Shown: positions 1 through 25,479, counted from the stretch's first letter. The stretch: DNA of 26,157 bases from Anthoceros angustus (GCA_010909165.1 VJWM01000382.1:1-26157); one strand, 5' to 3'. The notes: generated by a model from the letters alone, not told the origin. Numbers and translations: made by a program.

Positions 1-64
1 GCATCTGATGCCAATAGGATATCTTAGGAATATGCGATGCAGTCTATATATAGACCCTTCCATT

Positions 65-94
65 GAGGACAAGCTCGGATCATAGCTTGTCCTC
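65..94. repeat. Perfect 11-8-11 inverted repeat
   Basis: GAGGACAAGCT-cggatcat-AGCTTGTCCTC. A 14-bp perfect palindrome GTCTATATATAGAC lies at 42-55. Confidence 0.95.
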
Positions 95-347
95 TAGATA
101 TGCAATGCAGGCGTTGTGAGGCCAAAGCTATGACTCGAGGCGTGTGAGGAATTTGCGTGTTGTTCTCGTGGGAGAGTGTGTTTGTGCCACGTCGAGCTAC
201 TCCTCCTTGTTATTGGTTTGCACCTATATACTGCGTATTAGATTTGTTTGCTTGGTTGTTGGTGGGAAGTGCTTATATAAATTCAAGTGCTTACCTCATG
301 CGACGTAGGATGGTTTCTGGTGGCGATTTTCCATACTGTTTTGGTTC

Positions 348-360
348 TGACCACAGGTCA
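348..360. repeat. Palindromic site TGACC-ACA-GGTCA (5' side of YR gene)
   Basis: Direct sequence reading; matches 3550-3562 at 12 of 13 nt. Confidence 0.9.
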
Positions 361-428
361 TCCACGATCAAGAAGTCCTTGATATGTTTGAGAGGCTAAA
401 GTGTCTTTGGTCCGAAGATGACTTTGCT

Positions 429-3113
429 ATGGGTATGGAGGAAATTGATGATGAAGCAATTTTAGGGGGCGGGGTTTGATCCGTTGTCCCGGAGGGCTGT
501 GAATGATGCTTTGAGTGGTGGGAGGATAGGTCAAAAATAAAATAAGCGGTGTCGAAGTCTGGGGCCTTTATGAAAGTGAGTGGGGTGAGGGGATGGGATG
601 CTGTTGAGGATATTCCTCACAAGGATCTAAATCTTATTCGATATCCTTTTTCCATCAAGTTCGAATTTGAAGGACAACGATTTTCTCGAAGCGTAAATGA
701 TGATTCTTACTTGTTGATTTTGATATTCGACTTTCACATGGTGATTCTGATCTTCACTTGCGGTGATGTCTTTCTTCGTGGGTTTTTAGAATTTTAACAA
801 GGAAGTGCATCTGAACCAAAAGCGGCTTGTTACGATGTTCGATGATCAACATGTTTCATGGAATTTTCCATGGGTCCCGGTATTGGTTGCGTCCATGAAA
901 ATCAGCAAGGACCTTGGGATTGTGTCATGTCGAAAAGAGGTGAAGTTGATTTCGATGATGATGGCGTGATTCTTTCACGGAGATCATCAATGCTCATTTT
1001 AGGGGCTCAAAAAGGTAATTATTGTTGGTTTTGGGGTGTACATTGATTGTTCATTTATGGTCTTAAACACGGAGCCTTATGCCTATATTGTTTGCGGTGT
1101 GCATATTTTTGCATGACGAGGTTTGGAGTTCGAGGTGGTGAAGAGTTACATAACGCTCATTAGGGACTTCTCATTTGATTCAGGCGGACCTTTTGTTTTG
1201 GTTGATTTGTTTATTGTTTTTGTTTCGTCTTGATGTTTGATGTTTGTTTTATTGTCTTTGTTTTGAGCTCGTCTTCATTTGCGGTATGAAGATTCAAAAA
1301 TTACAAAGTGGACATGAAGAATTACCGTGAGCATTTCGTCAAAGGTCAAGATCTACGAAAGGATGTGATTGAAACTTTTAAAATTATTGATCACTCTCCC
1401 AAGTAGCGACAATCATCAATTCGGGGTTTCTCTTCAACCATTGATAACCCAAGATCAAATGTAAGTTTGTGGTTGATTGGGCTTGAGTTTTGTGGTTTGA
1501 ATTTTCTAGCTGTATGTTTTTGGCTAGGCTTGGTATGCAAAACTTCGTGTATCGAAAGGAATGCTCTCAAGGTTTATGAAGACTATGGCTGAAGCAGCTG
1601 GGCTTGTTGGCTATTACACCAATAAGAGCAGCCGTGTAACGATGATTAACGTTTGTGATGGCTCGGTGCCTTGATCTTTGGGAGAAGTGTGTGGCCATAA
1701 AGCGGATCTTTGGATTTTCAAGGTAAATTGTGGTGAAAGCTTGTGACATTTGAATCCTTTGTATGCTCCTTCGGTTCGATGTTTTGCGAGATATGAATGG
1801 GTCAAGCAAAAGTGCATGCAAGAGTTCTTGTTCACAGTGAGCAGCGATCCTATCGAGCTTTTGAGCGAAGAACTTAATCGGATGCGGGATGATTTAAGGG
1901 TGTTCTTCCATCAGCGATTGAATGTGACTCTGAAATAGTATTTTAGTCGACTGAAGATCGCCCTTGCAAGTGCAACATATTAACAATGTAAGTGTTTGAG
2001 ATTTGTTGCAAGTATAGGGACTTTGTTGCAAATCTGTCGACTTGTTTTTTATTTGGGTCTTACTCCTGGCCACTCTGTTATTCATCATGAAGACCACGAA
2101 CAAATGACCGAGTTTTACGCACCATGTGGTCCCTTTGTGTCAAGTTCGAGTTGGTATTGTCAAGTTCCTTTGTTGTAGGGCCATGTTGGATGATCTGTTT
2201 TAATCATCTTGGTTTTGTTGTTCGGTGGGAGGCTGGTGTTTTGGTTGCAAACATACCTCCACGATGGCCAAGGCATCCAGATGGATAACCGCAGGCCAAC
2301 AACACGGTGTTTTAGTGAAATTCCATATGTTGACAAGGTTGAGTCTTTGGCTGTTTGTTTGTGTTTTCATTTGTTTTGGAGTTTCCTAATTGTGTGCTTC
2401 TTGGCAGATTTCGAATCCATCGACTAGTGTAAGCAGCCTTACAGTCCCTCACTTCAACATTGATACAGCTCGATGGAAGTCGATGCAGTGGCCCCTCTGT
2501 TGGAGGGCATTGTGCAGAGTGAGTGTGATCAGTCATCTGAAGTTAACCAGGACAGAAATGTGGCTGTAGTAGCACCTCTGGATATCGTATTGCGACATGG
2601 GGGAAGCGCTTTGGCTTGAGATCTCGAGAGCAGGTGGAGTATGATTGAAGCGAAATGGAGTTTCAACGGCAAAAGGATTTGGAGGCACTTATAGAGAAGT
2701 GCGGTTGAATTACGAGTCTCTAAGCAAGAAAGCCCTTGAGATTTGAGGCGGAGAAATGGAGAGGAGACAAGAGCACATTAAGCATCGAGAAACTCAAGCG
2801 GCAAAGAGCGCAAGAGGTTGAAGATTGCGGTGGGAAAGACAACATGAGGCGAGAAGAATGTGCCTCGAGATATTTCCTTCTCTGCGAAAATCCGTCGAGA
2901 TTGGTAAGTTTGTTATGCTCTTTTTTAGTAGATTGAAAATTAATGGTTGTGTTTTATTAGGTTGTGACCTTGCGGAAGGGGACAATTTGGTCCAAGTCCT
3001 CAACTTCATCAATTGGTTGCCAATTATGATAATGTACAAGTGCCAATCAAGCCAAGTGGTCGTGAAAATTACATTTTCAATTGTATAATTATCGATTAAT
3101 TTCCCAAAATAAG
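429..3113 (+). pseudogene. DUF3504/Crypton-type tyrosine recombinase, multi-exon, frameshifted
   Basis: Collinear motifs: MKISKDLGIVSCRKEVKLIS (~894-953); AYFCMTRFGVRGGEELHN (1101-1154, cf. FGLRGGEEHRNL); RYED/SKNYK (~1282-1310); WYAKLRVSKGMLSRFMKTMAEAAGLVGYYTNKSSRVT (1531-1641, cf. WY..PVGKNTLSKMMK.MCE.AG...TNHSLRAT); CGHK (~1682-1693); possible catalytic Tyr in FARYE (1792); C-terminal NYIFN..N.xNF tail (~3066-3105). Multiple stops and frameshifts. Confidence 0.8.
1461..1527 (+). other. Spliceosomal intron in the YR gene
   Basis: GTAAGT...GGCTAG, 67 nt, T-rich; removal joins the LQPL.. segment to the WY motif. Further candidate introns at 2904-2960 and 3114-3206. Confidence 0.65.
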
Positions 3114-3549
3114 GTGAGTATCATTGCTTAAGTATTTGTTATGATCATTAGTGTTTTCTAGTATCGCCTAATTCTTGTTTGGGTGCTAATTTTGTTTTGT
3201 TTGTAGGTTTCATTGTTGTTGAAGCGAGTTCAATCTATCGGTATTTACTCTTCATTAGTTGAATTTGTATTTCATGCCATTACGGATATGAAACTCTGCA
3301 AAGAAAAGGTTTCTTTGTTGGTTTTGTATATCCACGGATCCGCATGAATATTATTTAATGAAAATGTTTTGTCAGTTAAGCGATTTTGGTGGGATTTCTA
3401 GAATGAGCTTCTACTAGATGCACTGGTATTCACTTGGTCGTCATTTTTCTACTCTAGTGCTCTATTTTCTACCTTGATGGTAGATCATTTTCACCCACTT
3501 GGCATGTTTTCTACTATATTGTAATGAATTTTACTATATTGGGTAAAAA

Positions 3550-3562
3550 TGACCAAAGGTCA
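3550..3562. repeat. Palindromic site TGACC-AAA-GGTCA (3' side of YR gene)
   Basis: Direct sequence reading; the homologous position in the second copy is TGACC-AATT-GGTCA (15969-15982). Confidence 0.9.
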
Positions 3563-3631
3563 ATTCTCTCTAAAATTCACCTCCTACCCGAAAAAATCAT
3601 GGGCGTCGAGGCCCCAGGACGAGGCGACTTT

Positions 3632-4167
3632 CACGTGCGTTAACGTTGGTGAGCGATCATCATGATGAAATGAGAATGAAACACTTTTTTTCATGATAAA
3701 GGCATTCACTCCATGCTCCTCAAATTCCAAACATCGATCGTCTGCGACGATGCGGAATCACGTGGTATATACACCATGTCTTTCGAAACCAACTTGCAAA
3801 TCATCATCTTGATGGCGATCGGCGAGCAAACAACTGCAAGATGAGTTCCGAGCCCACTTTTTCCGATCGTGAGTGCAAGGGCTTTGAAATATGCAGGCAG
3901 GCTGGTAGATTCTATTGTCGTTCGAAGCGGTGGAAGGATGAAGTGCATCGGTCAATGTGAGCATACTCGAGCTCGGGCCCGTGCGGCAATGGTGGTGTGC
4001 GAGGATCAAAACATGGTTCTAGTGTTGCAGGCGGGGTGAATCACGAGATTCGGGAGGAAGGGCAAGCTCATAGGCCAGGAGGCCAATGCAGCGGAGGATA
4101 CGGTGAGACCAACAAAGCGAAATCTTACGAATCCCGAGAGGATAAATTCGAGGCGACGACAAGACAT
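3632..4167 (-). repeat. Left arm of ~530-bp inverted duplication
   Basis: Reverse complement of ~5360-5884 with long exact blocks such as TCAAATTCCAAACATCGATCGTC and GATGAGTTCCGAGCCCACTTTTTCCGATCGTGAGTGCAAGGG. Confidence 0.95.
3775..3865 (-). pseudogene. F-box motif coding fragment (left arm, frameshifted)
   Basis: EKVGSELILQLFAR-(frameshift)-IKMMICKLVSK on the minus strand. Confidence 0.6.
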
Positions 4168-4719
4168 GTATATATATGTGGAGGAGATGGACAAGCCTCG
4201 AGGCGTACCATAGCATCGATATCCTTCATTGGATGTGAATGCAAACGCACATGGGAGAAAAATAATTGGTTTTATTAAAGAAAGAGAATAGATTGGGTCA
4301 GCCATCTATGAAAGGACATCAAAGGAAGATCGCAAGGATTGCTATAGATAGGAGCAATCCACAAGCATCAAGTGGGATGAAGAGGTGGCTTGCATGCATT
4401 GCCCTATGCTTAGTGACCTTGAAAGCCATCCGTTAGCTGCTAACCATGTTTCATTAACACTAATCAATACTTAATTAATGTAAGCGCTTTAGATTAATTA
4501 ATACTAATTAAAGACAAGTCATTAGATTAATTAATGCTAATCAAACACTAAACCCAAGTGCGAGAGTAGTGTCACGGTATGACATCCCTTAAGTTCCCCA
4601 TATTTGCGGGCTTTGATTTTTGAACGATGTTCCATCTGGTCATAAATCTTACTACTACCACTCTCAATCGGCTCTATTTTTTTTGGCTCAATCGGGCGTC
4701 CAGATTATGTCCTCCTTTG

Positions 4720-5355
4720 CAACTTATGCCAATGCAACAAAGCTTGCCTTGCCGCTCCAACCCTTGCACCATCCCTTTCACTTGACTTCATAACGGATTG
4801 CCTCGCAGCACTCACGGCTTTGATGTTCTTTGGTCTTCACGAATAAGCTTACTCATCAAGTGCTCCTTGCCCTCCTCGAGACATGCTCTCTTGAACAAGC
4901 TGGCGACTTATTACGGAAAGTGGTTTATCGTGCCCATGGCCTCCCTCGCTCTCTTGTGGCGATCATGATTCAGTTTACGTCCGCTTCGGCAAGCGGTTCA
5001 CGTCTTGGCACCAAGCTCGTATGTCTCGCCTTTTATCCTCGACGGATGGTGCTACGGGCGAGCTAATCAAGTTTTAGAGGATATACTCCGTGCTTATGCG
5101 GTGTGCACCAAACTTCGGTGGCTGGACTTTCTCCACCTCGTTGAGTTTGCCTACGCCCGCCTCAACGAGTTACTCCATTCTTGTTCAACAAAGGTTTTCA
5201 CCCCACGTTGCTTTCGCTTCCTTGCCTTGCTTGTGTCCCTGCCGCTTGTCGATTTTCTCAGCGTGTCCAAATTGCGATGGGCTCGTCGGTTTGCCCATGG
5301 AACCCAAAACCGCCCAATCGCCAATCATCGTCGTCGTCCTCAAGAATTTGCGGTT
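4720..5355 (+). mobile_element. Degenerate Ty3/gypsy integrase fragment (rve core to start of GPY/F region)
   Basis: Across frames: LCQCNK, SLDFITD, VFTNKLT, YRAHGLPRSLV, TDG..GRANQVLEDILRAY, WLDFLHLVEFAY, ANHRRRPQEF. Confidence 0.85.
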
Positions 5356-5359
5356 ACCT

Positions 5360-5884
5360 ATGTCTTCTTTATCCTTTATCCCTTCACAGGATTCGTAAGA
5401 TTTCCCTCGTTTTGTTGGTCCTTCGTATCCTCCGTTGCATTGGCCTGTGGCCTATGAGCTTGCCCTTCCTCCGAATCTCGCATTCACCACCTTCGAACAC
5501 GAACCATGTTTTGATCATGTTTCTTGCAGTAGCTCGAGCTCGAGTATACTCACATTGACGATGCACTTCATCCTTCCGCTTCGAGCGACAATAGAATCTA
5601 CCGGCTGCCGGGCATATTTCAAAGCCCCTTGCACTCACGATCGGAAAAAGTGGGCTCGGAACTCATCTTGCGGTTGCTCTGCTCGATCGCCATATCGAAG
5701 ATGATGATTTGCAAGTTGGTTTCAAAGACATGGCGACATGGTACCACGTGATTCCGGCGGTCGATTATGACGATCGATGTTTGGAATTTGAGGAGCATGG
5801 GTGAATGCCTTTTATCATGTAAAAAATGTTTCGTTCTCATTTCTCTCTGCGATGATCGGCTCACCAGCGTTAGCGTTAACGTGA
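5360..5884 (+). repeat. Right arm of ~530-bp inverted duplication
   Basis: See left arm; the arms differ by scattered substitutions and indels. Confidence 0.95.
5641..5739 (+). pseudogene. F-box motif coding fragment (right arm)
   Basis: SEKVGSELILRLLCSIAISKMMICKLVSKTWRH aligns gap-free to the F-box consensus E-L-L-x-x-I-L-x-R-L-P-x-x-x-L-x-x-x-K-x-V-S/C-K-x-W. Confidence 0.65.
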
Positions 5885-6473
5885 GCGTTCGTTGGTGTGA
5901 TGTTCTTTCAAATCGGAAGGAAAGAAATGATGTTATTTGCGGCTACTCTTTGGTAAGCTTAATTTAATATTTAATTGTAGCTAGCGGCGCTACACAAGGC
6001 GGTTCTGCGACGGTTTGAAGCATAGACCAATGTTGCGGAGACGGAAGGATGCAAGCAGTTTGAGAGGAGTCTCTCAAAGCGAAAACAAGCTATGACTAGG
6101 CATGTTCGTTGTTCTAATTATTTATCCTTGCTTCCGGTGGCGAAATCGACCAAGGATCCGAGCGAGGCTCTTGGTGCTCACAAAGCTGTACGGGTAGGAG
6201 GAAGCCACCTCAAACCGCAGGCGTTTGTATATATCGACACCACCACCTTGCCCTCGTTATCGGGCATGAGATATACTTCGTCCGGCCCGCCCGACTCTCA
6301 TATGAAAAGACATATGGTCGTCCGAGCGGCTGGCGGCGGTCGGTGAAGATGGAAGCGGGCATGGTGGCCATCACCGTCAGGACATGCTCGCAAAATCTAG
6401 CTCCCACACACACTTCAAACATGGGGCGGGCGGGAATCGCCACCCTATGGCCCACGCCGCGTGCGGTCTCGCA

Positions 6474-7670
6474 TGTTGAAGTGTCCCTTGCATTAAGAAC
6501 TTGGAATCTGCACTAGGCTTGCGATCATATAGCTCCAAGCCCGCTTGAAGATGCGCCCGGTGATTGCGACTGCGACATCCTCATGAGGCACGTGAAACGC
6601 AGCCCCTGACACTCCGTACCCCATATCGAAGCAGGCGTCGAACAAGCACGTCCATGGCTGGTTGTCTCACTCCACCTCCAGTCGAGGCGAAGGTCGACAG
6701 GTTGTCCATGTTCTCCGCTACCCACCGACTCCCACATTCCGCCACCAGCTTGAGGGCGCTGGCGTCCACCCACACGCCACATGATGGAGCAGTCACCGGG
6801 AGGCGCACGGGTCGAGGCGCACCAAGTGCGATGATCGGTGGCCACCCCATGCGGAGAGCGCATGCTGCGGCCAGCGACCTTGGGGACCCCAAATCACGTA
6901 TATGGGCAATCCTCCCACCAGCGCTTCCTACACTCCTAAGACCCTTCTCGTGACAAATTTGGGGCCGCCCCTCAAGCTCTTGTCCGGTCTTGAAATTTCA
7001 CCTTCCCCTCTCTTTTCTAGGTTTCTTCCTCCTCTCTTCTCTTTTTGTCTTTTTCTCTTTTCTCTCTTGCTCCTTCCTTCTCCTCTCTTGCTCCCTATCC
7101 TCTCTAGCTCCTCTCTCGTCCTCTCTCGCTCTCTCTCTCTCTCGCTCTCTCTCTTTTCTCTTCTCTTTTCTCTCTCTTCTCTCTCTTCTCCTCTCTTCTC
7201 TAATCTACCTCTTCCACTCTTCCTAGCTAACTATTACAGGCGCCCTCACAGCCTCCCGGCAGCGCCTCGGATCATAGGGCATTGCCCTCACGGACCTAGG
7301 CGGACATTTGGGCTGCAGTGGCGTCCGTCTTTGGATTTTGCTAGGGGTCTTCCTTCCGATCAGCCGCACCGTCACCACACAATGCGCTCCCTCACGGAGG
7401 CTACCGGTGCTACCTCCGGAAAGAAAGGTTTGGGCCCGCCCTCACCACAGTCACCGCACCTCAAGACCCTACGACACCATGCACCCTCACACGGTGGCAC
7501 GCGCTTGTGTAAGACAAGCACCTGGTCGGAGAGCAAGGCATGACATTTTATTATGGGGCTCCTCCCCTCTTATATAGGAGCTCGCATTAATTAAGTGCGG
7601 TGGGGTAGGTGGGGTTGCTTACGGTTTTAAGTAGGTGGCCTCTTAAAGGTTCTTAACCTACCTCCTAACA
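6474..7670 (-). mobile_element. Probable 3' LTR of a Ty3-type retrotransposon
   Basis: Minus strand: purine-rich AGGGGTTAGTGGGAT followed by TGTTAGGAGG at 7670; TATA context CCTATATAAGAGGGG (7571-7576); downstream GA-rich tract. The left end (TGTTG at 6474) is a guess and no partner LTR was found. Confidence 0.5.
7001..7223 (+). repeat. ~220-bp CT-rich polypyrimidine tract
   Basis: Almost exclusively C/T (CTCT, CTTCT, CTTTT units). Confidence 0.95.
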
Positions 7671-7685
7671 ATCCCACTAACCCCT
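7671..7685 (-). other. Candidate polypurine tract
   Basis: Purine-rich 15-mer directly before the TG LTR start on the minus strand. Confidence 0.4.
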
Positions 7686-7989
7686 AGGGGTCTTAATGAC
7701 CATTCACTCCCCTACCAACTATCGCCTACTTACTTCTTGGCATGGCGGGCGCGCCACCGTCTTCCTCCTCTTGGCTTGGGGGTCCCCCGTCCGGATCTCT
7801 CTTCACGTCGGACGGGAACCTCCACACTGTCTCGGCGATCTTGCGATGATGGCTGGGCCGCCCCTCTTGCAGGCGCTCTTGTAGAGGCAGCCTCTCTATA
7901 TCATCTGCCGCGCAATTACCTCAGGCGGTTGGGTGTTGGTGCTCACATCTGCCAGACACCCCACCAACTCTACCGGCTGCTGGAAATCT

Positions 7990-10153
7990 CTTCCTCTTCC
8001 ATTGGCTCCTCCCATTGAGCCTTACGCATCCATTTCACTCTCCAAGTCCGAATCTCCCAGGCGTGCAATTCTTCAAAATCTCCACATCGTCATCGTGGGG
8101 ACCCAACAACTTCCTTGTCAACAAGGGCATCTCCTTGGACTTGTTGACCCTAGCATGTAAGTGGACTGCATCTCGGCCCTTCAAACAAATCTCATCAAAT
8201 TCCTCGGGCCACTCTCACAGGCTATCTTACCATAGCATCCCTCTCAAGCGTCACCTCACTCAAGCAGGCTGTAAGTGACATTTTCGTGCATCTCTCTTCC
8301 ATGCCTCCGGTATCCCTTGCTTGCGCCTAATCGGCTGGGCGTTGCTTCTGCGGCGACCGACATCACGATGCATCATTTTCCTCGGTGGGCTACCTCTTCC
8401 TTCCACCGTTGGTGACCTCCGTTGCTTGCTTTGGAGCTCCTCACGCTCCTTGCTCCATGTGGCTGTCCTTCCTCCGGCTCCTTGAGCTTGGCCTCGATTC
8501 TTCATTCTTGGCTTGGCGCCTCGGCCTCAGGGCAGTCTTTCATCCCCTATTCCTTCTCGGCTGAAGAAATGAGAGTTCTTCTTGCCACTCCTTCCCACAT
8601 CGGTCTCCTCAATCTTACGGTTGAGGTAGCCACTTCCTTCATTCGCTCCCTACTTTCTTGTCTCGCTCTTTGTTCTTCAATCTTGAGCCCCAACCTTCTC
8701 TCCGGGTCAACTAGGCGCCTTTGCGCCATCTCCTTGATAGCCTTGCTATCCTTCTCCCCCACGTAGCAATGGCCCGCTGGTATCACGGCGGCTCTCACCT
8801 CCAACTCCTCTACTTCACCTGGGCTTGCTTCACTAATGGAGTATCAATTAGCTGACAGATGGTCAGCAGATCCTTCAAAGCCTTTGTCTTCTCATTCCCC
8901 TCCTGGGGTCGACTCTGACTGCCTTTCTCTTGGTGAGCAGTCTCTCCACTCCTGACTGTCGATGTTGGGTGGAACTCCTGTGACTCGGTCATCTCCTGGG
9001 GTGGGTTAGTTCCACCACCCTGCTCCATGGGGGTTGCCTCCTGTACACATGGTGGCACTGCCACCTCTTCCTCTTGTGCCACTGTCTCCCCCTGGACGAC
9101 AGGCACCTCTTCTTCCTTGGCGTCAGACGCCGGGGTGGTCTCATCATCCAAGATCACCACCTGTGGTGAAGCACTCCCTTGCTCCACCTTGGGTTCCTCC
9201 TCTGCCTTCTTCACCTTCTTTGGGAGAGGGACCCCTGTACCGTCCCTCGGAGGGACCACTTCAAACGGCTGGTAAGACTCCTCCGCTCTTCTTGGTCGAT
9301 AACCCATGTACCCCCACAATTGCACAAGGTAAGTACTCAAATGGATGCCTCGCCCCTCATTGTCCACAATGTTTGGCCTCGGACTTGTCTCGGTGATGCT
9401 CATAGGCCGACATGGTTGTCCCCGGTCGGTGAGCTCCTTGCTTGACTTCCACATGAAATGAAAGAATGCCTGCTTGAGTAGGTGGTTCGGTGGTCGACCC
9501 CAAAACTATCCTTGTAAAAGCTTCCACTTGAGGTCGCAATCTTATCCTCCGCCATTCGCGTCTTGGCGTCTATCCCTCCGATGAGCATCTTTGAGAGCTT
9601 CCTCGGGAAGGTCGACCACTCTTTCCATCTTCATTCCTCTCGTGAGCCACCATCACTCTCGGTTTCGGCCTCCCATACACCTTACGAATGTCTTTGGGCG
9701 GTCCATCCCGGATCATCCGCGTTCCTCCGTCGTCCTCTGTTTCTCCCTCCCGTCGGTTCATTGCATAGCAAGACTCAACCAATTCCACATTAGAATAGGC
9801 CCAATGCCTATCGTAAACTTTGGAGCTGCACATTTTTGACAGCCCAGCCGAAAATCCCATAAGTCTGGAGGAGACTTGCAGCTGGCTACAAAATCCGGCC
9901 CCTCCTTCTCGGCACATCCTTCTCGGGCTTCTCCTTCACACTTTTCTTTCTTCTTCTCCTTGGTGAGGCTCGCTCCCTCCTTCTTGCTGGCGCCTTGCGC
10001 ACTCCTCCGGGACTGCGTCTTCATCCACTTCCTCTCCGCTAATGATCTTCTCCAAAAATCCTTCCTGCTCTGATCCATTTTCTCCAAAATTCTTCTAAGT
10101 GTTCTCCTTGGTCTCCTCCGGTGCCTCCGTCCTCGTCCTTGATCCTCGACCAA
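7990..10153 (-). CDS. Large frameshifted accessory ORF of the LTR element, function unknown
   Basis: Chain of same-strand ORFs (9758-10153, 9570-9917, 8810-9454, 8547-8804 and downstream). Includes a globular-looking HLSTYLVQLWGYMGY segment, an acidic Pro/Glu/Val-rich linker and a charged coiled-coil-like part. No RT, RNase H or integrase motifs seen. Confidence 0.5.
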
Positions 10154-10207
10154 CTCAATGAGCTAAACACTCGCCTTACATATATAGGGTGAGGATTTTC
10201 CACCCCA

Positions 10208-10335
10208 AAGGCCAAGGACAAAATTTCCCTGTCCAAGGCCAAGGACCTTTTCCCCTTGATAGCGTTAGAAATTCCTCAACCACGAAGGCCAAGGAAAAAT
10301 TTCTCCGGCTATTCACCAATTGCAAAGGCCAAGGA
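10208..10335. promoter_or_regulatory. Four perfect copies of AAGGCCAAGGA between two TATATA boxes
   Basis: Copies start at 10208, 10235, 10285, 10325; TATATA at 10181-10186 and 10478-10483. The repeat is certain, the regulatory role is inferred. Confidence 0.55.
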
Positions 10336-11130
10336 AGAAAAATCAGCGGAGACATGCAAAAATTCGACCCGCCGCACGTCATGACTAACCCCCTTGCTTG
10401 ATCGTCTTCCGCTTTGCGGGATCGTCAAGAAGGCCGAGGAGGCACTGATTTCCTCCTCGAACGCCCGAGGATTTCTCTATATATGCGCATCGCTCCTCCC
10501 TTTGTTATTGCTCTCTTCCTCGCCGCGCTTACAGTCACGTCGCTCGCGCACACGCCAACCCGCTCATGCGGAATTTGCGCTGACACGCAACGAGGCCTCT
10601 CTCGCGCGTCTTCCGGTGGTAAGTGCCTTACTCCCGTGCATGTTGGCAGGCGGGGGTGACGGCGCCGCCACTAGGCCAGGCACCAACCCTCCTTCTGGTT
10701 GTTCGGCCCATAAACCTTCCTCTCGTAGCGTAAATTTTCCGGACCTCTGTCCGGACCTCGAATCCTTTCGCTTGGACCCATTTTTAGGTCCGTTTTCCTC
10801 CTTCATCCCAGTCCGGTCGAGGGGACTGCCGATCCTATCCGCCGCTTCTCAGCTCACACAACTTCTTGTTGCTTCGTCGACAAACCTTTGGTAAGAAAAA
10901 GAAAAAAGAAAAAGAAACCGCCCTAACTATTCAATGGAGGTATTAGGAGGCATCCGCTCGCCGTTCTAAACGATGGACCTGTACCCGTGTTCCACAATTG
11001 TGCCTTTGCTCAACTCTCTGCACACCGTGCGCCAATGGCAAGAAAAGCTCGGCTAATCGGCACGGCGCTTTGCGGATCGTCATCACAATGTCACAGGCGT
11101 GGTCACTCCATTCATCTCCACCCTCCCTCG

Positions 11131-11192
11131 GCATCCATCCTTGTCTTACACCTTCCACCTCGCATCCATCCTTGTCTCACACCTTCCACCTC
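11131..11192 (+). repeat. 31-bp tandem duplication
   Basis: GCATCCATCCTTGTCT(T/C)ACACCTTCCACCTC x2, one mismatch. Confidence 0.95.
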
Positions 11193-12249
11193 CGCAGATC
11201 CATCCCACACCGCACATGGTGCTACAGCCTGACGAGGTTTGATGATGATGTCAAGACCTACTCAGAGTAGCTACCCACTCCGCCAACTGGCTGTGGATAT
11301 AGAGGCTCTAAGGCCTTGAAAAGCTAGCTCGAGGCGTAAGCCTCAGGGAAGAAGCAAGTGCAGGAAAACCCCGGGGCTCTCGGGAGATCTCCTCCCACTC
11401 TAGCCCGGCCACGCCATCCCATCCGGCCGCTTCGCACGTTGGGTTTGCATTCCATGAGACTTGTGTGAAAGTTCGAGGCCTCGTGATAACACGATGATCG
11501 CTACCTCAAGTAGACACAGCTTCTCGACCAGCCTTTCTAAGCGAGCAAGGCGCCTCTACTCACCCTCTTCTTGCTGCCACTGCTGGGCCTACTTGCCTAA
11601 TCGCTCCTAAAACTACCAACTCCCGACCCTACAACGACTACAATTAACACCTGTGTGTCCCGCTTAGCAACAGGGAGGCTCATCACGGGCGCCCCTGGAC
11701 CCCCGATCCACACTGCACCTTCATTCCTACTTAAGACCACTCTCTCCACCTGAGCGCCTTTTACAGTTGTGACGGATTCGTCCTTAGGCTCGGCTCGCGG
11801 CCTTCACACGCCTGGGTTCTATCGGCATAACCGCACTGGGTCGGCCTCCACCAGCAAGTTCTTCCTTGGGCTGATTGCCATGAGTTTGACAACAAACAAT
11901 AGAACCTCCAGAGTGCTTTCCCCTAGTCTACCCTCAAGCCGAAAGTCTCTGGCATTACACATAACCTAAAGCAAAGCACTTACAAAGGAACCATCTGCCA
12001 GTGGGCAGCAACTCGTTTAGAGGCACCTGCAACAGCAAGTCCTCCACCAAGACCACTCAGGCCACGCGACTCTCCCACTCGATCTACCGAGCGTTGGCTC
12101 ATAGTCGCACGAAATTCCTTTACATACAAAGGACTGCAGAGGCGGGAAGTCGCTAAAGACGCGATATCACTTTTACTCTGTGAAACTCTCCCCTCTTATA
12201 GGAGGCCTCCCACATACATCCTCCCTTAGGTGGACCGTAATCTGCAGTG

Positions 12250-13900
12250 CACCTTTTCCAATTCTCTATTATTTTTTCCCATCGCCAAAGATTAATGGCT
12301 GGCACCTAAGCCCACGTCCCATCCTTTGATCAGCAAGTAAGTCTCTATTCATTAACTCACCTAAGATCATCCTTAAAGGGATGTACCACACCACCTTATT
12401 CTTCCCATTCCCCAAAGCTCATTTATGGTCATTGGACCACCTCAATCCTTATCTCACTGGGTGGCGCGACGTGTCCCTTATGCGGGATTGGCTCCCCTAC
12501 GCCCTCCTCCTTGTTCCCTCCTTTGCCCCTTCCCCGTGATCACAGCTGCTGCCTGGCTGTAAAAGTGCCAATCCTGCCCCTTCCTTCAATTTTACAAAGG
12601 CGCGCCCAATTCACATCACTCTCCGGCAAGGTCGCGCATACCCTTCCGGCGCACCTAGGGCGCCTTTTCTCCAAATTTCTCCTCCGCCGCTTCATCGTTC
12701 ATCGGCACCTAACCTACCCGGCGGTAGTCGGCGGAACTATCTGAGTAGGTCGGTGACTTCTACCACCATGGTGATGTCTGATGCCTTCATTTTTCTTCTC
12801 CTCCCCATACTGTGCCTCTTGGGTTGGAATCTTCCGTTATCCTCCTCCTCCTGTTTGGTTGTCCATACCTATCATGGAGCATTCTCAAAGATTCTTCCTC
12901 CCTCACCCTGTCGACCGGTTTCCACTAATCCCTCCTCGGGCCCTTTGCCATGAGCCTCTTCTCCTGGGCGCTGGCCCTTCCTACTGCACTGTAAATGGGG
13001 TGAGGAACCTTCTCACCCTCCTTCTTTCTTAACGAGTCCGGATCCCGTCACATGTTCTCCTCCGGTGGGACCTGTTTCCCCACCTCCTCTTCTATTCCTG
13101 CGGGGGGTATTGTGTCACTAGGCCCCTGGCTCCTTCCACTCACATGACCCTGGGCCTCCACGGCTCGACTCTAACAAGCCCTCAAGGCCCAGCTCAAGCG
13201 CACTCCCTGTAGTCTCAGCCAGTGCCGGCGGACTACGGGCGTTGATTTGTCTACCACGGTGAGTCAGCGGACTACCAGGTGATCACCCAGTGGTGGTGAC
13301 CTTATTGAGGCGGGCTGGTCCTCCACTCTCCTTTTCCTCCTTCCGCGGCCATCTTCGATGCTCCTTGCCAAGGGCTCTCAGCCTCTTGATTCTCACTCGG
13401 GATTCCATGAAACCATGTCACTCATGACCTCATCAAAGTCGAGGGCCTCCAGTTGCACTTGTTAAACTCCTTCACAATCATCATCAGCAGGGGATTTCGT
13501 GTCCTCCTCTTGGCCAGCTTACATTAACACCTCATTGTTGTGGCCTTCAAAATCTATTATGGAGGTGAGCCCTAAGCTATGATATTGCATGCGGGATCAT
13601 CAACAACTCTCGTGGGCCACTCTCCATCCTCACACCCTACCTTGTAGGCATCCTTTGCTGATGGTTAATTCTCCCACCTTGACATGGAGTGGAGGTCACA
13701 TTCTCCTCCTTGCTCCCTTGAAATTTGGTTGGCCATCTTTGTTTGAAAAGGGCATAATCGCCCTTAAAATCTCTCCCTTCCTCACCACCAAGACATCCAT
13801 GTACCACTTTCTTGTGGTACTCCTCTTGAACCTCCTTTGTTCCAGGCTTTCAATTCCACTTGCTTGGCAAGTCTCTCCTTCTCCACTTGCCACTCACTTC
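12250..13900 (-). mobile_element. Highly degenerate gag/protease-like remnant
   Basis: Weak motifs only: PNFKG..ENVT (~13690-13735) and KIEGRAGLALLQPGSS (cf. ALLDSGSS, ~12545-12595). No long ORF. Confidence 0.35.
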
Positions 13901-15294
13901 TCGCGCTCTAGCTCTTGCACTGCTTGATCCTTGAGCCTTGACCCAGCAGCGCTTCTCTTCAAATTAGACGGGTCCTTAGCGTAATTCCTCTTCCATGTCT
14001 CCGGATTTTGATGGCTTAGGTAGCCATCACTGTTCACTCTGTCTCGTGCGGCCCATTTGTTGGATGTACCTTCTCTCCCCTTCCTAAGATTCTATTTTGC
14101 CCTTTCTCTCCCGCTCTAAAGTTTGGGCAAAATGCTCTTCATCCGCCTTCCTCCCGCCAGTCTGGGTGGGTTGTTGCCCCGAATGAGCTCTCTATCGGGT
14201 TTGTGACAACTTCCCCTCCAGGGACGCTACTCCTTGGCGCTGATCCACAAGGTCCACGAGGTCATGGCGGAGTTTCTCCTGACCTTAGGCCTTGGTCAGA
14301 ACACCTTCTCATGTCGGACTCCATGGCCTCCAATTGCCATTTGGTCTACTCAAGGCTCTCACTGCTTCCGGATCATTTCTTGGGCCTTATTTGCCCAGGA
14401 CTTCCTCTTAACGCCCACAGCAGGGTCAAGCACTTCAGTCCCCCCTAGCCCCTTCAAATCTACAATGAGTGCTTACAAGCACTTTTCGTTGTAGGTCAGG
14501 AGCGGAGTCGGCGGAGGCTGAGGTATCGTGCTGCGGTGTGGAGTTTTGTGGGCGCGGGGTTGTAGTTGGAGGCGCCCCAGGCTGGGAGTTTGGAGGCACT
14601 TAGACTAGAGGCGAGGTAACCTATGCTGCGCCGCCAGTGCGACCCTCACGGTGGTAGGATGCGCCTCGTGCGTTGGGATAGAGTGTCTCCTCCCACGTAG
14701 GAATGAGGGTGTCTTCAGCCCACCACAGTAATCGGATGCTACAACTCTCTACAAGTGGTAGGAGGTAGGCCCTACAATTGTTTGTTGTTGGTTGTAGGTC
14801 CCGAGGCGTGATTCGACGAGCGAGGAGCGGGCCGCTGAGTTGGTAGATGAGGATGTGCCAATTGTGGGAAGGCAATGGGAAGGAATAGTGGACGATCACG
14901 GGGTGGTGAAGTCGCGTTGCAACGTAGGGGGTCCCCAGGGCTCATGACTCATCACGTGGGTGTGGACCTATAGTTGTAGGGTGTCGTTGTAGGTGGAATT
15001 GGACGGAGGCGGCATGGTGAGGGCTGGCGTCTGTGGAGTGAGTTGAAGTTGCTCCACTGTGTGAGGGAGCTTGGGGGGTGTGAGGTGTGGTTTGTGCCTT
15101 GGATCTGGTGACCGACAAACAAGAGTCTCATGGGACAAAACCTAATGTACTTAGCGATGAGTGGGATAAGTGTGGCTGGCCACTGAGGTGAATCTCGGAA
15201 AGCCTTGGGATGCCTCCCACACAGTAAAGATTGCAGTGGAAAGGCAACGAGCAAAAGATTGATAATGGGCCTGGTGGGTCCATTGCCTCCCACG

Positions 15295-16058
15295 AAACCC
15301 GTGAGATCGAAAGTGATCTTATCTTCCCTTTATTACATTTGGCAGTGAAAACTAATGTTTGTGTTTTATTAGGTTGTGACTTTACAGAAGATGAACAATT
15401 TCTTTGAAGCCCTCGCTTCATCAACTCTCGCTAATCATGATAATTGGACAAGTTGTGCCAATCAAACCAAGTGGTCGTGAAAATTACATTTTCAATTTGT
15501 ACAATTGTACAGTCAATTTTCCAAACTTAGGTGAGTATCTTTGCTTAAGTATTTGTGGTTTATTACCGAATCTTTTCAGTGTGCCCCTAGTTATATGCCT
15601 AATTTACGTTTTTTATGTAGGTTTCAGTGTTCCAGAACCGGGGATCATTCTATTTTGGTATTTACTCTACATTATTTTAATTTGTATTTCATGCCATTCT
15701 GGATATACAGGAAACTCCACAAAGAAAAATTTCTTTGTTGATTTTTTGTATATCCTGGATCCGCATGAATATTACTTATCAAAATATGTTTTTGCCAGAT
15801 TAGCGATTTTGGTGGGATTTCTAGAATGAGCTCGCTTAGATGTACGATATTCACGTGATGGTCCATTTTTCTACATTCATGCTTTCAACATTGATAGTGA
15901 GGTATTTTCATCTACATAGCATGTTTTCTACTCTATTGTAATAAATTTTACCCTATTCAACAAAACAATGACCAATTGGTCAATTCTCTCTAGAATCTAC
16001 CCCTAGTCCCCAAAAAAATCAGCGAGGCCCGAGGCCCCTGATTTGAGGCTGCGACTTT
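15295..16058 (+). mobile_element. 3' fragment of a second Crypton-like element
   Basis: Collinear with ~2885-3631: same acceptor GTGTTTTATTAG (15372), exon VPIKPSGRENYIFNLYNCTVNFP, intron 15531-15620, TGACC..GGTCA site and GCGACTTT end. Confidence 0.8.
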
Positions 16059-17690: not shown

Positions 17691-18178
17691 ATGCACCACG
17701 TATGCAGTCGAGGAATTTGCGATTATGGAAAATGGATGAATAACTTCCAATATCCACAAGTATTCCAAGATTTCAAAAACAACTATGTTCCCATTTGGGA
17801 ACATAGTCTTAAAGATCAGTATGACCAATCCTCAATGAAGATGGGTCTACACCAACACTACAACAGCACATGGAGATACAAAGAAGTAAGATTCTTGGAT
17901 TAATTGGTTTGTGTGAAGTAATACTATTAATACCTTGTATTTTGGTAATGTAGAGATATCGGAAGCCATTGAAAATAAGGAGCTGAAAACTACAGACTTG
18001 TTGTCCCTCATGGAAGATCCAGAAATAACGAGAAACATTCAAAAGGTCTATTTATATTAAGATTTCCTATATATAAAAATATGGAAATTCTAACGTTGGT
18101 GTCTCTTTCCAGAACGTACAATCACATTTCCGCAGTGTGGGAAATCTTCACAGCCATTGCTTAACATTAGTCATAAAG
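17691..18178 (+). CDS. Unidentified spliced AT-rich gene fragment
   Basis: Introns 17886-17953 and 18046-18112 (GT..AG, 68 and 67 nt) join in frame: ILNEDGSTPTLQQHMEIQR|KISEAIENKELKTTDLLSLMEDPEITRNIQK|NVQSHFRSVGNLHSHCLTLVIK; next donor at 18179. Confidence 0.55.
17782..17807. repeat. Perfect 12-2-12 inverted repeat
   Basis: ACTATGTTCCCA-tt-TGGGAACATAGT. Confidence 0.95.
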
Positions 18179-20129: not shown

Positions 20130-22200
20130 CCCTCTCAGTTGCACGAGCGTGCAGGCAGCAAGATCGGCAGGAAGCTGGTCCTCTGGCTTCTCTGCCTGAG
20201 GATCTGTACCTCCTGTGATCCAGTTTCAGGATCCTGATCCACAGGTGCCTTGCCATCTTCCACGGCTGCTTTTGGCACTGCATTTCTTGCTGATTCCTTT
20301 GCAGATTTCTTTGGTGATCTCGAGCACGAGCAGGGGCAGGAGGACGTTGTTGGAGTGGTTCTACCTTGACCTCCTGCACAGGCTGCTTGGCTGGAAGATG
20401 ACGTGGAATCGGGGATCTCCGGAAGAAGTTGGATTTAGGCCGAACAGGAGGCAGAGGAGGCAGCTCCACAACACTGGTACTGCTGCTGCTTTCCTTGGTA
20501 CTGCTACTGCTCCCCTTGCTACTACCGCTGCTGTCTTCGCTACTACCGCTGCCTCCCTTGGCGCTACTGCTACATCCATTGCTACTGCTACTTCCTGACT
20601 ACTGTCCTCCTCGACAAGCCCTTGGACAGGGGCCCCTGCACCATTGATCTCCAACGTCCTCTGCTCCTGCTCCTCCACCGTGCCCTCTACAACCGTGCCC
20701 TCCACCACCGTGCTCTCAACAACCGCGCTCTCCACCACCTCGCTCTCAACAACAGTGCTGTCCACCACCTTGCTCTCTACCACATTGCTCTCCACCACCT
20801 TGCTCTCTACCACATTGCTCTCCACCACCTTGCTCTCTAGCACATTCCTCTCCATCACGGTAGTCTCCACCAAGCTCCTTGCTTCAACAACCGGCTCCTG
20901 CAATGACTTCTTCCGGGCTTGGGAGGGAATCGGAGACTGGCGGACAAACTTGGAAGCAGCTCTTGACGGGGAGGGAGCGGCAGCAGCAGCATCTGGAGCA
21001 GCAACAGCAGCATCTGGAGCTGGAGGATGATCAGCAGCCGGAAGCTGGACAGCCATGACTGGAGATTCAGCTGTGGCAGCTACAGATTCTCCCATGCCAG
21101 ACTTGGACGCCGCCTCTGCCTTGTTGGAGCCGCCGCTCCTGGAAACCTCAGCAGCCTTAGGAACTCTGTTGTCGGAATGCTGCTCTCTTGCGACACCATT
21201 CACTACCAGCAAAGGAGGAGGAGGAGAAGGAGGAGGAGGAGAAGAAGGAGAAACAGGAGGTGGAGGGGGAAGAACGGGCAGAGATTCGTCAGGCTGCTCT
21301 TCCACAGCATCGTCTACGACGACAGGGGCAGGAAGAGAGACAGGGCACCGTGGCCTGGAGGTGAGATTGGGAATAGGAGACCGCTTCACGAAGGAGGACT
21401 TAGGCCGAACAGGCACACCCGGGTCCTTCCGCCATGCTACCCTTCTCACCTCCTGTTTCTGCACCTGCTCTTGCTGCTGAACCTGCACCTGCACCTGCTC
21501 CTGCTCCTTTCTCCTTCCCTCCCCTTTGTCCTGCCAGCCCGCACGGGAATCGGGAATGCTTCCTGAACCGAGACGGCGGTCTGCGGCAGATGCAATGGCG
21601 CAGGAGTGAGCACATGCTGAGCCCTGGATGAAGCCAGGTCGTCCCCTCTTGCTGGGCTGCGGAGGCGGCGGTGATGCTCCTGCTCCGAACGCGTAGTGGA
21701 AGCTCCCATCTGCAAGCTCTGCCAGGCCCACCAGCTGCATCAAAAGATGGTACCTCAGTGACAAGCACTCTCTCCGCCTCTCTTGCCATTGCCATTGCCA
21801 TTGCCATTTTCATGCAGTTGCCATTGCCATCGCACTCGCCATTGTCACACATTTCTCACACACAATGCAGGGAGGAGCAATCGAGGTGATAGTATACCTC
21901 TCACAGAAGTGATGACGACATCATCGTCGCTCACGGCCAGCAAGGGGCCGCCTTCCGCTGGGCCCTGACGCTGGGGCAGGCGGCCCCCGCCATGTCGTCT
22001 GCCCAGGCTCAAGCCTGCTTGCTGATTCTGCTGCTGCTGCTGCTGCTGATGCTGCTGCTGATGCTGATGCTGCTGCTGTTGGCAGCAGCTGGAACTCGAG
22101 CTCGAGCTCGTCGGCAACCTCGCCAGCTGCAGCTTGCCGGCCAGCAGCGCCATGCCACCGCCCAGCCCCATCGAGGGCTACAGCATCGATCACGGAGCCG
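20130..22200 (-). CDS. Low-complexity Pro/Ser/Ala/Val-rich protein with three F-x-[KR]-[RQ]-SPIP motifs
   Basis: 467-aa ORF 20361-21764 continues by apparent 1-nt shifts into 19972-20469 and upstream ORFs. Start, end and exon structure are uncertain. Confidence 0.65.
20672..20870 (-). repeat. Coding 15-nt tandem array (VVES-x pentapeptide, ~12 units)
   Basis: VLESKVVESNVVESKVVESNVVESKVVDSTVVESEVVESAVVESTVVEGTVVEGTVEE. Confidence 0.95.
22028..22078 (+). repeat. Interrupted (CTG)n tract
   Basis: CTG run interrupted by ATG units. Confidence 0.9.
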
Positions 22201-22766: not shown

Positions 22767-24981
22767 TCATCTCTGGTGGAGCCTCCTTCTGGTGTAGACT
22801 CTTCCATCTTGCTGCTTCACCTCCAAGTGGTCATCCGTGACAAGGACATGGAAGAAAGAATCCACACCAGCAGCCTCCCTGTCCTTCTGGAGCCTCAACA
22901 CGGCATCGCCATCACCGCTCTCCACATACGCAGGTAAAAGGATGTCGTAGGTGATTTCACTGGGCTCAAGCCTCTCCATCATTTCAGTATACAGCTGCCC
23001 CGCCTCGTCCAGCCGGCCCACCTTGCAAGACAGTGTACGAGGTGTGTTGTACGTGGCAACGTCAGGCTGGACGCGCAGGTTCTGCATTATCCTCAGCAGT
23101 TCCAGAGCTGTGTCCAGCCTGCCGGTCTTCCCGAACCCATCAATCAGGACTGTGTAAGTGTGAGTATCCAGGCTGATCTTACTTGCCTTCATCAGCTCTA
23201 TCAGTGCAAAGGCGGAGTCGAAGTCGCCCACTCTTCCACATCCATCAAGCAACCTGTTGTACGTCAGTGCAGTTGGCAGGTAGCCGTTGTCCTGCATCTC
23301 TCTCTCTGAAAGGCGCATGCAGTGTCCATGTCCCCTTCCTTGGCATGAATGTCGATAAGTATGTTGAAAGTCCAGGCATCCAGCTTCACACCCCGCTTCT
23401 TCATCTCACCCACCAGGCTGCCCACCTGTGCCAGATCCCCAGGCCCCCCTCTCCTCGCAAGGCAGTGCATGACACTGTTGTAGGTGACCACGGAAGGCCG
23501 ATGTCCCTCCTCCTTCATCTTTCCAAAGAAGGAGGAAGCTTCATGTGCTCTGCCTGCCTTGCCAAACCCGTCGATCAAGATGTTGAACGTCCAGACGTCC
23601 GCCCGGATCCCCTGGACTTCCATCTCCCGAAACACCTGCTCGGCCCGATCCACAGCTCCTGCCTTGCACAAGTGGGTCAAGAGGCTGTTACACAGAGTGC
23701 TGTCCCTGCTCACACACTGACTGTTTGCCTCGGTATAATACTCCACTGCCTCATCCAGCCTCCCAGCCTTCCCCAGCGTTGATCACAAGAGTGTAAGAAA
23801 TATGGTCCTGGGGACAGGAATCAACACTCTCCATCTTCCTGAAGAACTCACAAGCTTCATCCACCCTCCCAGCCGTGCCGAGAGCGTTGAGCAGACCGTG
23901 GTAAGTGGTTGCATTCCGTTTGTGCCCTTGCACAGCCATCTCCTGAACAGCTTCAAGGCAGTATCTACATCGCCAGCCCTGCCAAAAGAGTTGATCAGCA
24001 TGTTGTATGTGACATCCAGCAGCTTGCATCCGGAGGCCCAGAATTCCTCAAGTAATCCCTGCTCTCCTCAAGCCTACCTGCGCCGGCCAAGGTGAGGAGC
24101 AGAAACCCATAAGTCTGAGCCTCAGGCACCAGCCCCAGCTCCTTCAGCTCCTGGAATAGCTCCACCGCCAGTTCCGCATTGCGAGCTCGGCAGAAGGCTC
24201 GTAGCAGGCAGTTGTAGGAAAACAGGTCCAACCGAGGGATGTCATGGCGCATCCTCTCCACCACCCTGCCCAGATCATCGAACCGGTCGTGCTTGGCCAG
24301 CAAGTCCACCAAGCAGGTGTAGGTGACGAGGGACGGAGGGCAGCCGGCCCTGCCCATTTCCTCGAACGTTCTCATCATCTCCGCAACCTTGCCAGCCCGG
24401 CCATAGCTCTTCAACAGGTTGGTGTACACATAGACGGTGACCTGAGCTCCGTCCTCCCGCATCCGCTTCAGGGCCTTCTCCACCTCGTCGAAGGCCCCCG
24501 CCCCCAGCACGTCGATCAAGACCGCGTAGCACAGGGAGTTGGGCACGAATCCGCCGTGCCTCCTGGCCCATTGGAAGAATCCAGATACCACGCTCGCATC
24601 TCTCTCTTTGCACAGCCTTCAACACCTCCGCCACATGGTAGGCTTGAGCCTCAGCCGGCCCAGCCTCCCCAGCGATTCCTGCATTCCCCTCCCCCATCTT
24701 CCCGACCTCAGAATCCTGATCAGGTGCCCTATCACCTCGCTGTCCAGCCTCCGTTGCGGCAGAGAGGCCCATTTCACCAGCTTTTCCTCCTGCTCCTGTC
24801 CCTGTCCCTGCTCCTTCTCTTCCTTCTGCTCTTCAGATTCCAGCTGCTCGGCTATCTTGTACTGTGCTATCACCTGCCCATCGCCCGCCCTCTCCACAGC
24901 TGCGCTGCACAAGGACGACACACGAAAATTGCTGAAGGCTGAAGGGATAGACCTGGAAACCAGCCATCGCCGGTGGGTCAT
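22767..24981 (-). CDS. P-class pentatricopeptide repeat protein (~16 repeats), probably organelle-targeted
   Basis: Consecutive ~35-aa repeats, e.g. TFNILIDGFGKAGRAHEASSFFGKMKEEGHRPSVV, over seven ORF pieces. Arg/Ser-rich N-terminus MTHRRWLVSRSIPSAFSNFRVSSLCS resembles a mitochondrial presequence. No E/DYW domain seen. Confidence 0.95.
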
Positions 24982-25283
24982 CGGAGCTCAAAAAGGAGAC
25001 GACAGTCCTGGAGTGACATCTGCTCGTGGCACGTTGCCAATGTATTGACCGAGAACTAGAAAATGACAAGGCGGCCATGGTGCGAGCAGGATCGAGCTCC
25101 ACCGGTGACCAACTGCACTTCATGAGGGTGGAGAAGGAGAGGCAAGCCTGCTGTGTGTCAGCCCCTGAATAAATCAGGCATACCAGGCATACAGTTTCAG
25201 TAGGTGATGAAGGAAAGAAAACTGCAAAGACCGTTCTTGGCATCCAGGTAATAGTATCTCGATCTTGTTTATCAACCGTCATC

Positions 25284-25479
25284 CTAGAACATTGCCTTCT
25301 GGATCGTCCAGATATGAAACCCATATAGAAGTCTAATTAACAGCAACTCAAACAGCATGTGGATTATGCTCCATACTTTCACCTTCGAGCCTGGAATTTC
25401 GGTCCAGTTCACGGCAACCTCTTTCATGGGAATGTGTAACTGTTTGCAGAGATATACGATTTCCACATCAAAACACCAC
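25284..25479 (-). CDS. ALG5: Last exon of dolichyl-phosphate beta-glucosyltransferase
   Basis: RWCFDVEIVYLCKQLHIPMKEVAVNWTEIPGSKVKVWSIIHMLFELLLIRLLYGFHIWTI matches the plant ALG5 C-terminus; preceded by acceptor-like CAG (25480-25482). Confidence 0.9.

Follow-up and report, generated by a model that had tools for sequence, protein, structure and literature searches.

Two independent palindromes with identical arms around a decayed, putatively Crypton-like recombinase gene

In the window, by which we mean the whole 26,157-base stretch of DNA that was analysed, a short palindrome with the arms TGACC and GGTCA stands on each side of a decayed recombinase-like gene and is found again in a second, partial copy of the DNA at the 3′ end of this gene. 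The observation as a whole is real, yet the original prediction overstated it. It is partly confirmed, with two independent sites and no similarity between their flanks. We put at about even odds (roughly 50%) that the identity of the arms at 348 and 3550 is a coincidence between short palindromes that happen to lie in non-coding DNA on either side of a dead gene. A role of the palindromes as subterminal binding sites is a candidate only. Nothing in the tests points to function, and such a role is neither supported nor excluded by the sequence comparisons reported here.

Results

The pattern TGACC-N(2-6)-GGTCA has three matches in the 26,157 bases of the window, while 0.09 matches are expected from dinucleotide shuffles; none of the 100 shuffles reached three. 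The 5′ palindrome, TGACC-ACA-GGTCA (TGACCACAGGTCA), was located by pattern search at 348–360. The 3′ palindrome, TGACC-AAA-GGTCA (TGACCAAAGGTCA), lies at 3550–3562 according to the pattern search and the alignment of the copies. The palindrome of copy 2, found by pattern search at 15969–15982, is a perfect 14-bp TGACCAA-TTGGTCA (TGACCAATTGGTCA). No strand is assigned to any of the three. Their arms are identical, and the spacers are ACA, AAA and AATT (3–4 bp). Thus, the three positions given in the original prediction are correct, these are the only such matches in the window, and the statement that the arms are invariant and the spacer is variable holds for all three sites. The remaining 22 kb of the window contains no match to TGACC-N(2-6)-GGTCA, and the half-site TGACC is not enriched in the window (54 found, 55.7 expected).

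Read from the sequence, the dyads at 348 and 3550 stop at 5+5. The copy 2 site has 7+7 arms with zero spacer and lies within a 24-nt imperfect dyad that is 75% complementary. Formation of a stable hairpin at the palindromes was rejected, as single-strand folding gave just −2.9 kcal/mol (z −0.67) at the 5′ palindrome and −3.3 kcal/mol at the 3′ palindrome.

Both palindromes of copy 1 are located in non-coding DNA, one on each side of the recombinase-like gene. The 5′ palindrome lies about 67 nt downstream of the TATA-like TATATAAA (274–281). A distance of about 70 nt from this palindrome to the ATG had been proposed; it fits the ATGs at 430 and 436, but the first ATG (384) is only 24 nt away. 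At the other side of the gene, the hexamer AATGAA occurs at 3523–3528, and the 3′ palindrome of copy 1 starts 22 nt after it. The copy 2 palindrome starts 24 nt after AATAAA at 15940–15945. The distance of about 70 nt claimed between the 3′ palindrome and the 3′ end agrees with the alignment, being 69 bp in copy 1 and 76 bp in copy 2.

On the plus strand at 384–1935, reading frames and motifs recognized by eye outline a decayed, interrupted gene resembling Crypton/DUF3504-like tyrosine recombinases. The motifs, all seen by eye on the plus strand, are FGVRGGEE with the box I arginine (1047–1160), WY...AGL.GYYTNKSSRVT with a lysine at the position expected for the HxxR histidine (1528–1671), GHK (about 1690–1730) and RYE (1747–1935). 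These boxes follow one another in the expected order and with the expected spacing; stops and frame changes occur between the pieces. Using embeddings, we found DUF3504 and DUF3435 clusters among the nearest Atlas look-alikes of two separate gene pieces, with scores of 0.88–0.91, and DUF3435 is a tyrosine recombinase cluster. A Pfam search carried out exon by exon gave no recombinase match even at E up to 10, with a few unrelated sub-threshold matches. No match was obtained with the exon-piece queries in PHROGs, NCBIfam or the PDB sequences. The exhaustive representative search with the 83-aa piece 546–794, which is a non-catalytic query, returned 0 matches, and the word search with the 48-aa piece 1528–1671 returned no candidates. 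Scanning of metagenomes gave 0 matches for a 24-mer from the best-conserved 3′ block and 279 pattern matches for the 48-aa piece, 0 of which were confirmed. Exact look-up of 10 ORFs of the window in a protein collection found none of them. With by-eye motifs and embedding look-alikes as its basis, and with negative profile and sequence searches, the identity of the gene as a Crypton-like tyrosine recombinase is a lead.

The DNA at the 3′ side of this gene is present twice in the window. In a blastn self-comparison, 2934–3599 and 15346–16021 are 77.7% identical over 698 columns, and the alignment carries the similarity of copy 1 and copy 2 to a common end at 3631 and 16058. The 3′ terminal block of copy 1 that is common to copy 2 therefore occupies 2934–3631 on the plus strand and ends ...GGCGACTTT (self-comparison, alignment). 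Copy 2, at 15346–16058 on the plus strand, ends ...TGCGACTTT and is a 5′-truncated 3′ fragment without the recombinase coding part (self-comparison, tblastn, alignment). Of the diverged second copy described in the original prediction, the homology to 2934–3631 is real, but the copy is restricted to the 3′ fragment and has no recombinase coding DNA. Pieces translated from 1–2940 have no significant tblastn match elsewhere in the window, and in sensitive alignments the DNA upstream of 15346 scored at chance level against 1–1000 and against 1900–2940. We rejected the idea that copy 2 is an internally deleted derivative, since the sequence upstream of it does not match 1–1000. That copy 2 reaches further upstream than about 15290 was likewise rejected on the alignment.

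Within the 3′ block, GT...AG intron-like borders are conserved, namely AAG/GTGAGT at about 3115 and TTTGTAG/G at about 3207. Such borders argue against a retro-copy and for a gene with introns that was copied as DNA.

In this block of about 78% identity, the palindrome at 3550 and that at 15969 share the same alignment columns. They are one ancestral site present in two copies, and the number of independent occurrences is therefore two (348 and 3550) and not three. The palindrome said to recur in the second copy is indeed present there, but it is homologous to that at 3550 and does not count as an independent occurrence.

We also compared the conservation of the 3′ palindrome with that of its surroundings. 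In the alignment of copy 1 and copy 2, 37% of the 25-column windows equal or exceed the conservation of the window centred on the palindrome. The right arm of the palindrome is covered by an identical run of 15 nt, GGTCAATTCTCTCTA, which is exceeded by six identical runs of 16–31 nt. The spacer is 3 in copy 1 and 4 in copy 2, so that the half-sites would be shifted for a dimer. Judged by this comparison, which concerns the 3′ site in two copies, conservation of the 3′ palindrome is not above that of the surrounding DNA.

The 3′ end of the repeat is well fixed at 3631 / 16058, where both copies end GCGACTTT and then diverge. An unrelated 2.25-kb inverted-repeat element was found by self-comparison at 3631–5886 (no strand assigned), with arms of about 500 bp that are 83–85% identical. 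Its start is no more than about 3 bp away from the end of the repeat in copy 1 and marks where copy 1 stops. Insertion of this element into the recombinase element was rejected, because 5887–6600 has no homology to the DNA downstream of copy 2. At the ends of the block 2934–3631 / 15346–16058, neither a terminal inverted repeat nor a target duplication can be seen. No tRNA or Rfam features were found in the window. A PPR gene is located at 22770–24591, which fits plant DNA.

At the 5′ side, there is no composition break at 283–348, and the G+T-rich composition of 1–3400 is already present at position 1. Since there is no 5′ second copy and no composition break, the start of the element may precede the window. 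The sequence GGCGAYTTTC occurs exactly twice, at 322–331 and across the 3′ end at 3623–3632. This pair resembles a Crypton-type terminal direct repeat and is a lead, the local match being at chance level (no better than shuffled flanks, 139/500). A perfect 11-8-11 palindrome at 65–94 was considered as a partner of the 3′ end and rejected, its arm being absent near 3500–3640.

To judge how readily such palindromes arise by chance, we used counts and shuffles. Palindromes of the 5-N3-5 type are common, with 6 in 1–3631 and 36 in the whole window. Three other arm sequences occur twice at spacer 3 in the whole window, and four arm sequences occur three times at spacers 2–6. In shuffles of 1–3631, some 5+5 arm recurred at spacer 3 in 2.3% of cases and, when spacers 3 and 4 were pooled following the grouping of the original prediction itself, in 11%. 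At spacers 2–6, recurrence was seen in 44% of the shuffles of 1–3700. When, in addition, one site had to fall within the first 500 bp of 1–3631 and its partner within the final 150 bp, 1 of 1500 shuffles (0.07%) reproduced the arrangement. This condition was set after the data had been seen, and its first 500 bp are measured from where the window begins and not from an established end of the element. The rarity of this edge placement is moderately suggestive and falls short of proof. The motif frequency expected earlier is about right for a pre-specified pattern; the motif, however, was picked post hoc.

The flanks of the palindromes do not resemble each other. A weak inverted similarity had been noticed by eye between about 283–347 and 3563–3631. 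It turned out to be at chance level, with a score of 13 against a shuffle mean of 12.9, and 236 of 500 shuffles were equal or better. In a shuffle test, the wider outer flanks and the inner flanks of the palindromes showed no similarity, either direct or inverted. No terminal inverted repeats were found between 230–480 and 3430–3680 apart from the palindrome itself.

Discussion

Crypton DNA transposons are reportedly, after Goodwin in 2003, tyrosine-recombinase elements. Crypton transposons as tyrosine-recombinase DNA elements were also treated by Kojima and Jurka (2011, PMC3212892). Both of their termini carry direct repeats of 4–6 bp, and terminal inverted repeats are lacking (PMC3212892, PMC13465315), and many DUF3504 loci contain introns (PMC13465315). 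The element described here is similar to Cryptons in the DUF3504/Crypton look of its gene, as judged from by-eye motifs and Atlas look-alikes, in the absence of terminal inverted repeats and in the sharp 3′ end common to two copies. Its gene also resembles those of Cryptons and DUF3504 loci in apparently having introns. There are differences as well. The gene has a lysine in place of the HxxR histidine (YTNKSSR), and the host looks like a land plant, whereas Chlamydomonas is named as the only green-lineage Crypton host (PMC3212892). The palindromes are located inside the element, while none are mentioned in the descriptions of Cryptons (PMC3212892, PMC13465315).

The reading that we prefer is the following. 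The segment 1–3631 would be one worn-out Crypton-like copy, and its core would be a tyrosine-recombinase gene that is divided by introns and has been disrupted by stops and frame changes. The segment 15346–16058 would be a 5′-truncated fragment of the 3′ end of the same element. The 3′ palindrome would lie in the non-coding tail, just past a hexamer similar to a poly(A) signal, and both copies would have inherited it. The identical arms at 348–360 would then most likely be a coincidence. Several observations stand against coincidence. Edge placement was reproduced in just one of the 1500 shuffles, under a post hoc condition, and the remaining 22 kb of the window lacks the motif. The motif arms are perfect in all three instances despite a divergence of about 22–28% between the copies. 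The sites are non-coding and flank the gene, which is the place where cis elements of a mobile element are expected.

It is possible, if on balance unlikely, that the palindromes are accessory (arm-type) sites for a dimeric protein of the element, either the N-terminal domain of the recombinase or another product. In the excised circle, the palindromes would flank the joined ends and would aid the assembly of the recombination complex, while the crossover would occur at the true termini. In copy 1, the same 5-bp arms and the same spacer length are indeed found on both sides of the gene, the arrangement of one site per edge is rare in shuffles (0.07%), and the 3′ palindrome is subterminal in both copies. 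With GGCGAYTTTC at 322–331, a candidate left end would be separated from the 5′ palindrome by 17 bp. For a dimer site, ten specified bases are a normal information content, and the palindromes suit this. On the other hand, the 5′ end of the element is undefined, without a composition break at 283–348, and the GGCGAYTTTC match is no better than in shuffled flanks. Conservation of the 3′ palindrome is at background, and its spacer length varies between the copies. The arm-type sites of phage lambda attP and the subterminal motifs of Ac/Ds and En/Spm occur several times at each end and are conserved from copy to copy. The palindromes are like them as short motifs that lie inside both ends, away from the cleavage points, but they differ in that there is one putative site per end, not the usual array, and in that conservation is at background level. 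The Crypton literature describes no subterminal palindromes (PMC3212892, PMC13465315).

A more specific form of the arm-type proposal may be outlined for a land-plant Crypton. Following excision, the right end, with a palindrome 69 bp inside, would join a left end at about 322–331, with a palindrome about 17 bp inside, and a dimeric protein of the element bound to the two palindromes would enclose the junction and build up the integration complex. We regard this architecture as distinctly doubtful.

It is improbable that the palindromes are gene signals, that is, a promoter-proximal or 5′-UTR element and a poly(A) or termination element recognized by a factor of the host that may belong to the WRKY/W-box type. 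The TATA-like TATATAAA upstream of the 5′ site is in line with such signals, and so are AATGAA and AATAAA, which precede the 3′ site of the two copies by 22–24 nt. At the 3′ site, both copies contain GGTCAAT, the reverse complement of which contains TTGACC. However, GGTCAAT is not enriched (7 found against 3.95 expected, with 11 of 100 shuffles reaching 7), and TTGACC is present in one of the four half-sites of copy 1. Paired W-boxes (TTGACY, bound by WRKY) are similar to the palindromes in the TGAC core, and on the minus strand TTGACC can be read at the 3′ site of either copy. Unlike paired W-boxes, the 5′ site lacks TTGACC, and there is no enrichment of the half-site. The palindromes do not qualify as paired W-boxes: TTGAC(C/T) is not found in both half-sites, which read CTGACC and ATGACC at the 5′ palindrome and ATGACC and TTGACC at the 3′ palindrome.

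There is a slim chance that the block of about 700 bp, 2934–3631 / 15346–16058, is a short repeat of its own; the 3′ palindrome would then lie outside the recombinase element. Strong homology between the copies begins abruptly at 2934 / 15346, within an apparent intron of copy 1, and nothing upstream of copy 2 is like 1–2933. Against a separate repeat, conservation inside the block includes an exon-like stretch as well as the intron-like GT...AG borders, weak similarity reaches about 50 bp further upstream (alignment columns 1–55), and the ends of the block show neither a terminal inverted repeat nor a target duplication.

That the palindromes serve the tyrosine recombinase as core crossover sites, as originally predicted, has a chance close to negligible, even though they have dyad symmetry, like the core sites of loxP, FRT, dif and att, and there is a site on each side of the gene: the homology between the copies continues 69–76 bp past the 3′ palindrome to the common end, so that the element boundary is not in the palindrome; the arms are 5 bp and the spacer 3–4 bp, unlike the 11–13-bp arms and 6–8-bp spacer of tyrosine-recombinase core sites (PMC3212892); the spacers ACA and AAA differ within copy 1, and that of copy 2 differs in length, whereas the overlap should match between partners; and Cryptons are described with 4–6-bp terminal direct repeats. 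Taken together, the position of the boundary about 70 bp beyond the palindrome, the geometry of arms and spacer, and the unequal spacers led us to reject the crossover site.

What has been gained is that the number of independent occurrences is corrected from three to two, the crossover reading is removed, and the 3′ end is set at 3631 / 16058. At present, the support for a conserved motif consists of two 13-bp sequences that match each other within a dead copy. To our knowledge, no cis-acting sites of Cryptons have been experimentally defined. Their ends are characterized only by the direct repeats of 4–6 bp (PMC3212892, PMC13465315). If the arm-type sites proposed here are true, they would represent the first description of a cis-acting architecture in a Crypton. 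A conserved palindrome inside both ends of a plant Crypton family, if true, would be a handle for binding and excision assays, and a conserved subterminal palindrome would help to annotate Crypton elements, which are hard to delimit.

Candidate termini of the recombinase element, and a palindrome near the window start

The sequence GGCGAYTTTC has exactly two matches in the whole window. One of them (322-331) lies 17 bp from the 5' TGACC palindrome, on the upstream side of it; that palindrome precedes the decayed Crypton-like recombinase gene. The other match (3623-3632) spans the 3' end of the repeat, the block common to the recombinase element and the fragment of its second copy. It is possible that this pair represents a Crypton-type terminal direct repeat. 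Statistically, the match was no better than that obtained with shuffled flanks.

A perfect 11-8-11 palindrome, GAGGACAAGCT-CGGATCAT-AGCTTGTCCTC, occupies positions 65-94, and the 5' TGACC palindrome follows 254 bp downstream. This 11-8-11 palindrome has the same geometry as the classical core site of tyrosine recombinases. When its arm was searched for near the 3' end with up to 2 mismatches allowed, no recurrence was found.

Other features of the window

An inverted-repeat element of 2.25 kb (3631-5886) starts about 3 bp or less from the 3' end of the recombinase element. It has two arms in inverted orientation, each about 500 bp long (3638-4146 and 5375-5875), which are 83-85% identical, and the 1.2-kb centre between them gave no Pfam match. 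No target duplication is visible at this element. Another perfect palindrome, of the 12-2-12 type (ACTATGTTCCCA-NN-TGGGAACATAGT), is located at 17782-17807 in AT-rich DNA.

Strand asymmetry is strong in two regions. The plus strand of 1-3400 is rich in G+T (GC skew about +0.25, AT skew about -0.15). In 7000-14000 it is C+T that is in excess: GC skew is near -0.25 and AT skew reaches -0.33, with a GC content of 52-55%.

Short repeats are present at 20641-20895, 20981-21038 and 22021-22078. A 15-nt tandem repeat, comprising 12 overlapping 90-nt copies in register, is enclosed in a minus-strand ORF of 467 aa, for which the Pfam search returned no match. CAG/CTG-type repeats occur near it. Also on the minus strand, a PPR-repeat gene (22770-25324) is read in several different frames, with ORFs at 22767-23318, 23264-23746, 23995-24591 and 24833-25324. 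Either the gene is broken, or indels in the assembly have affected it.
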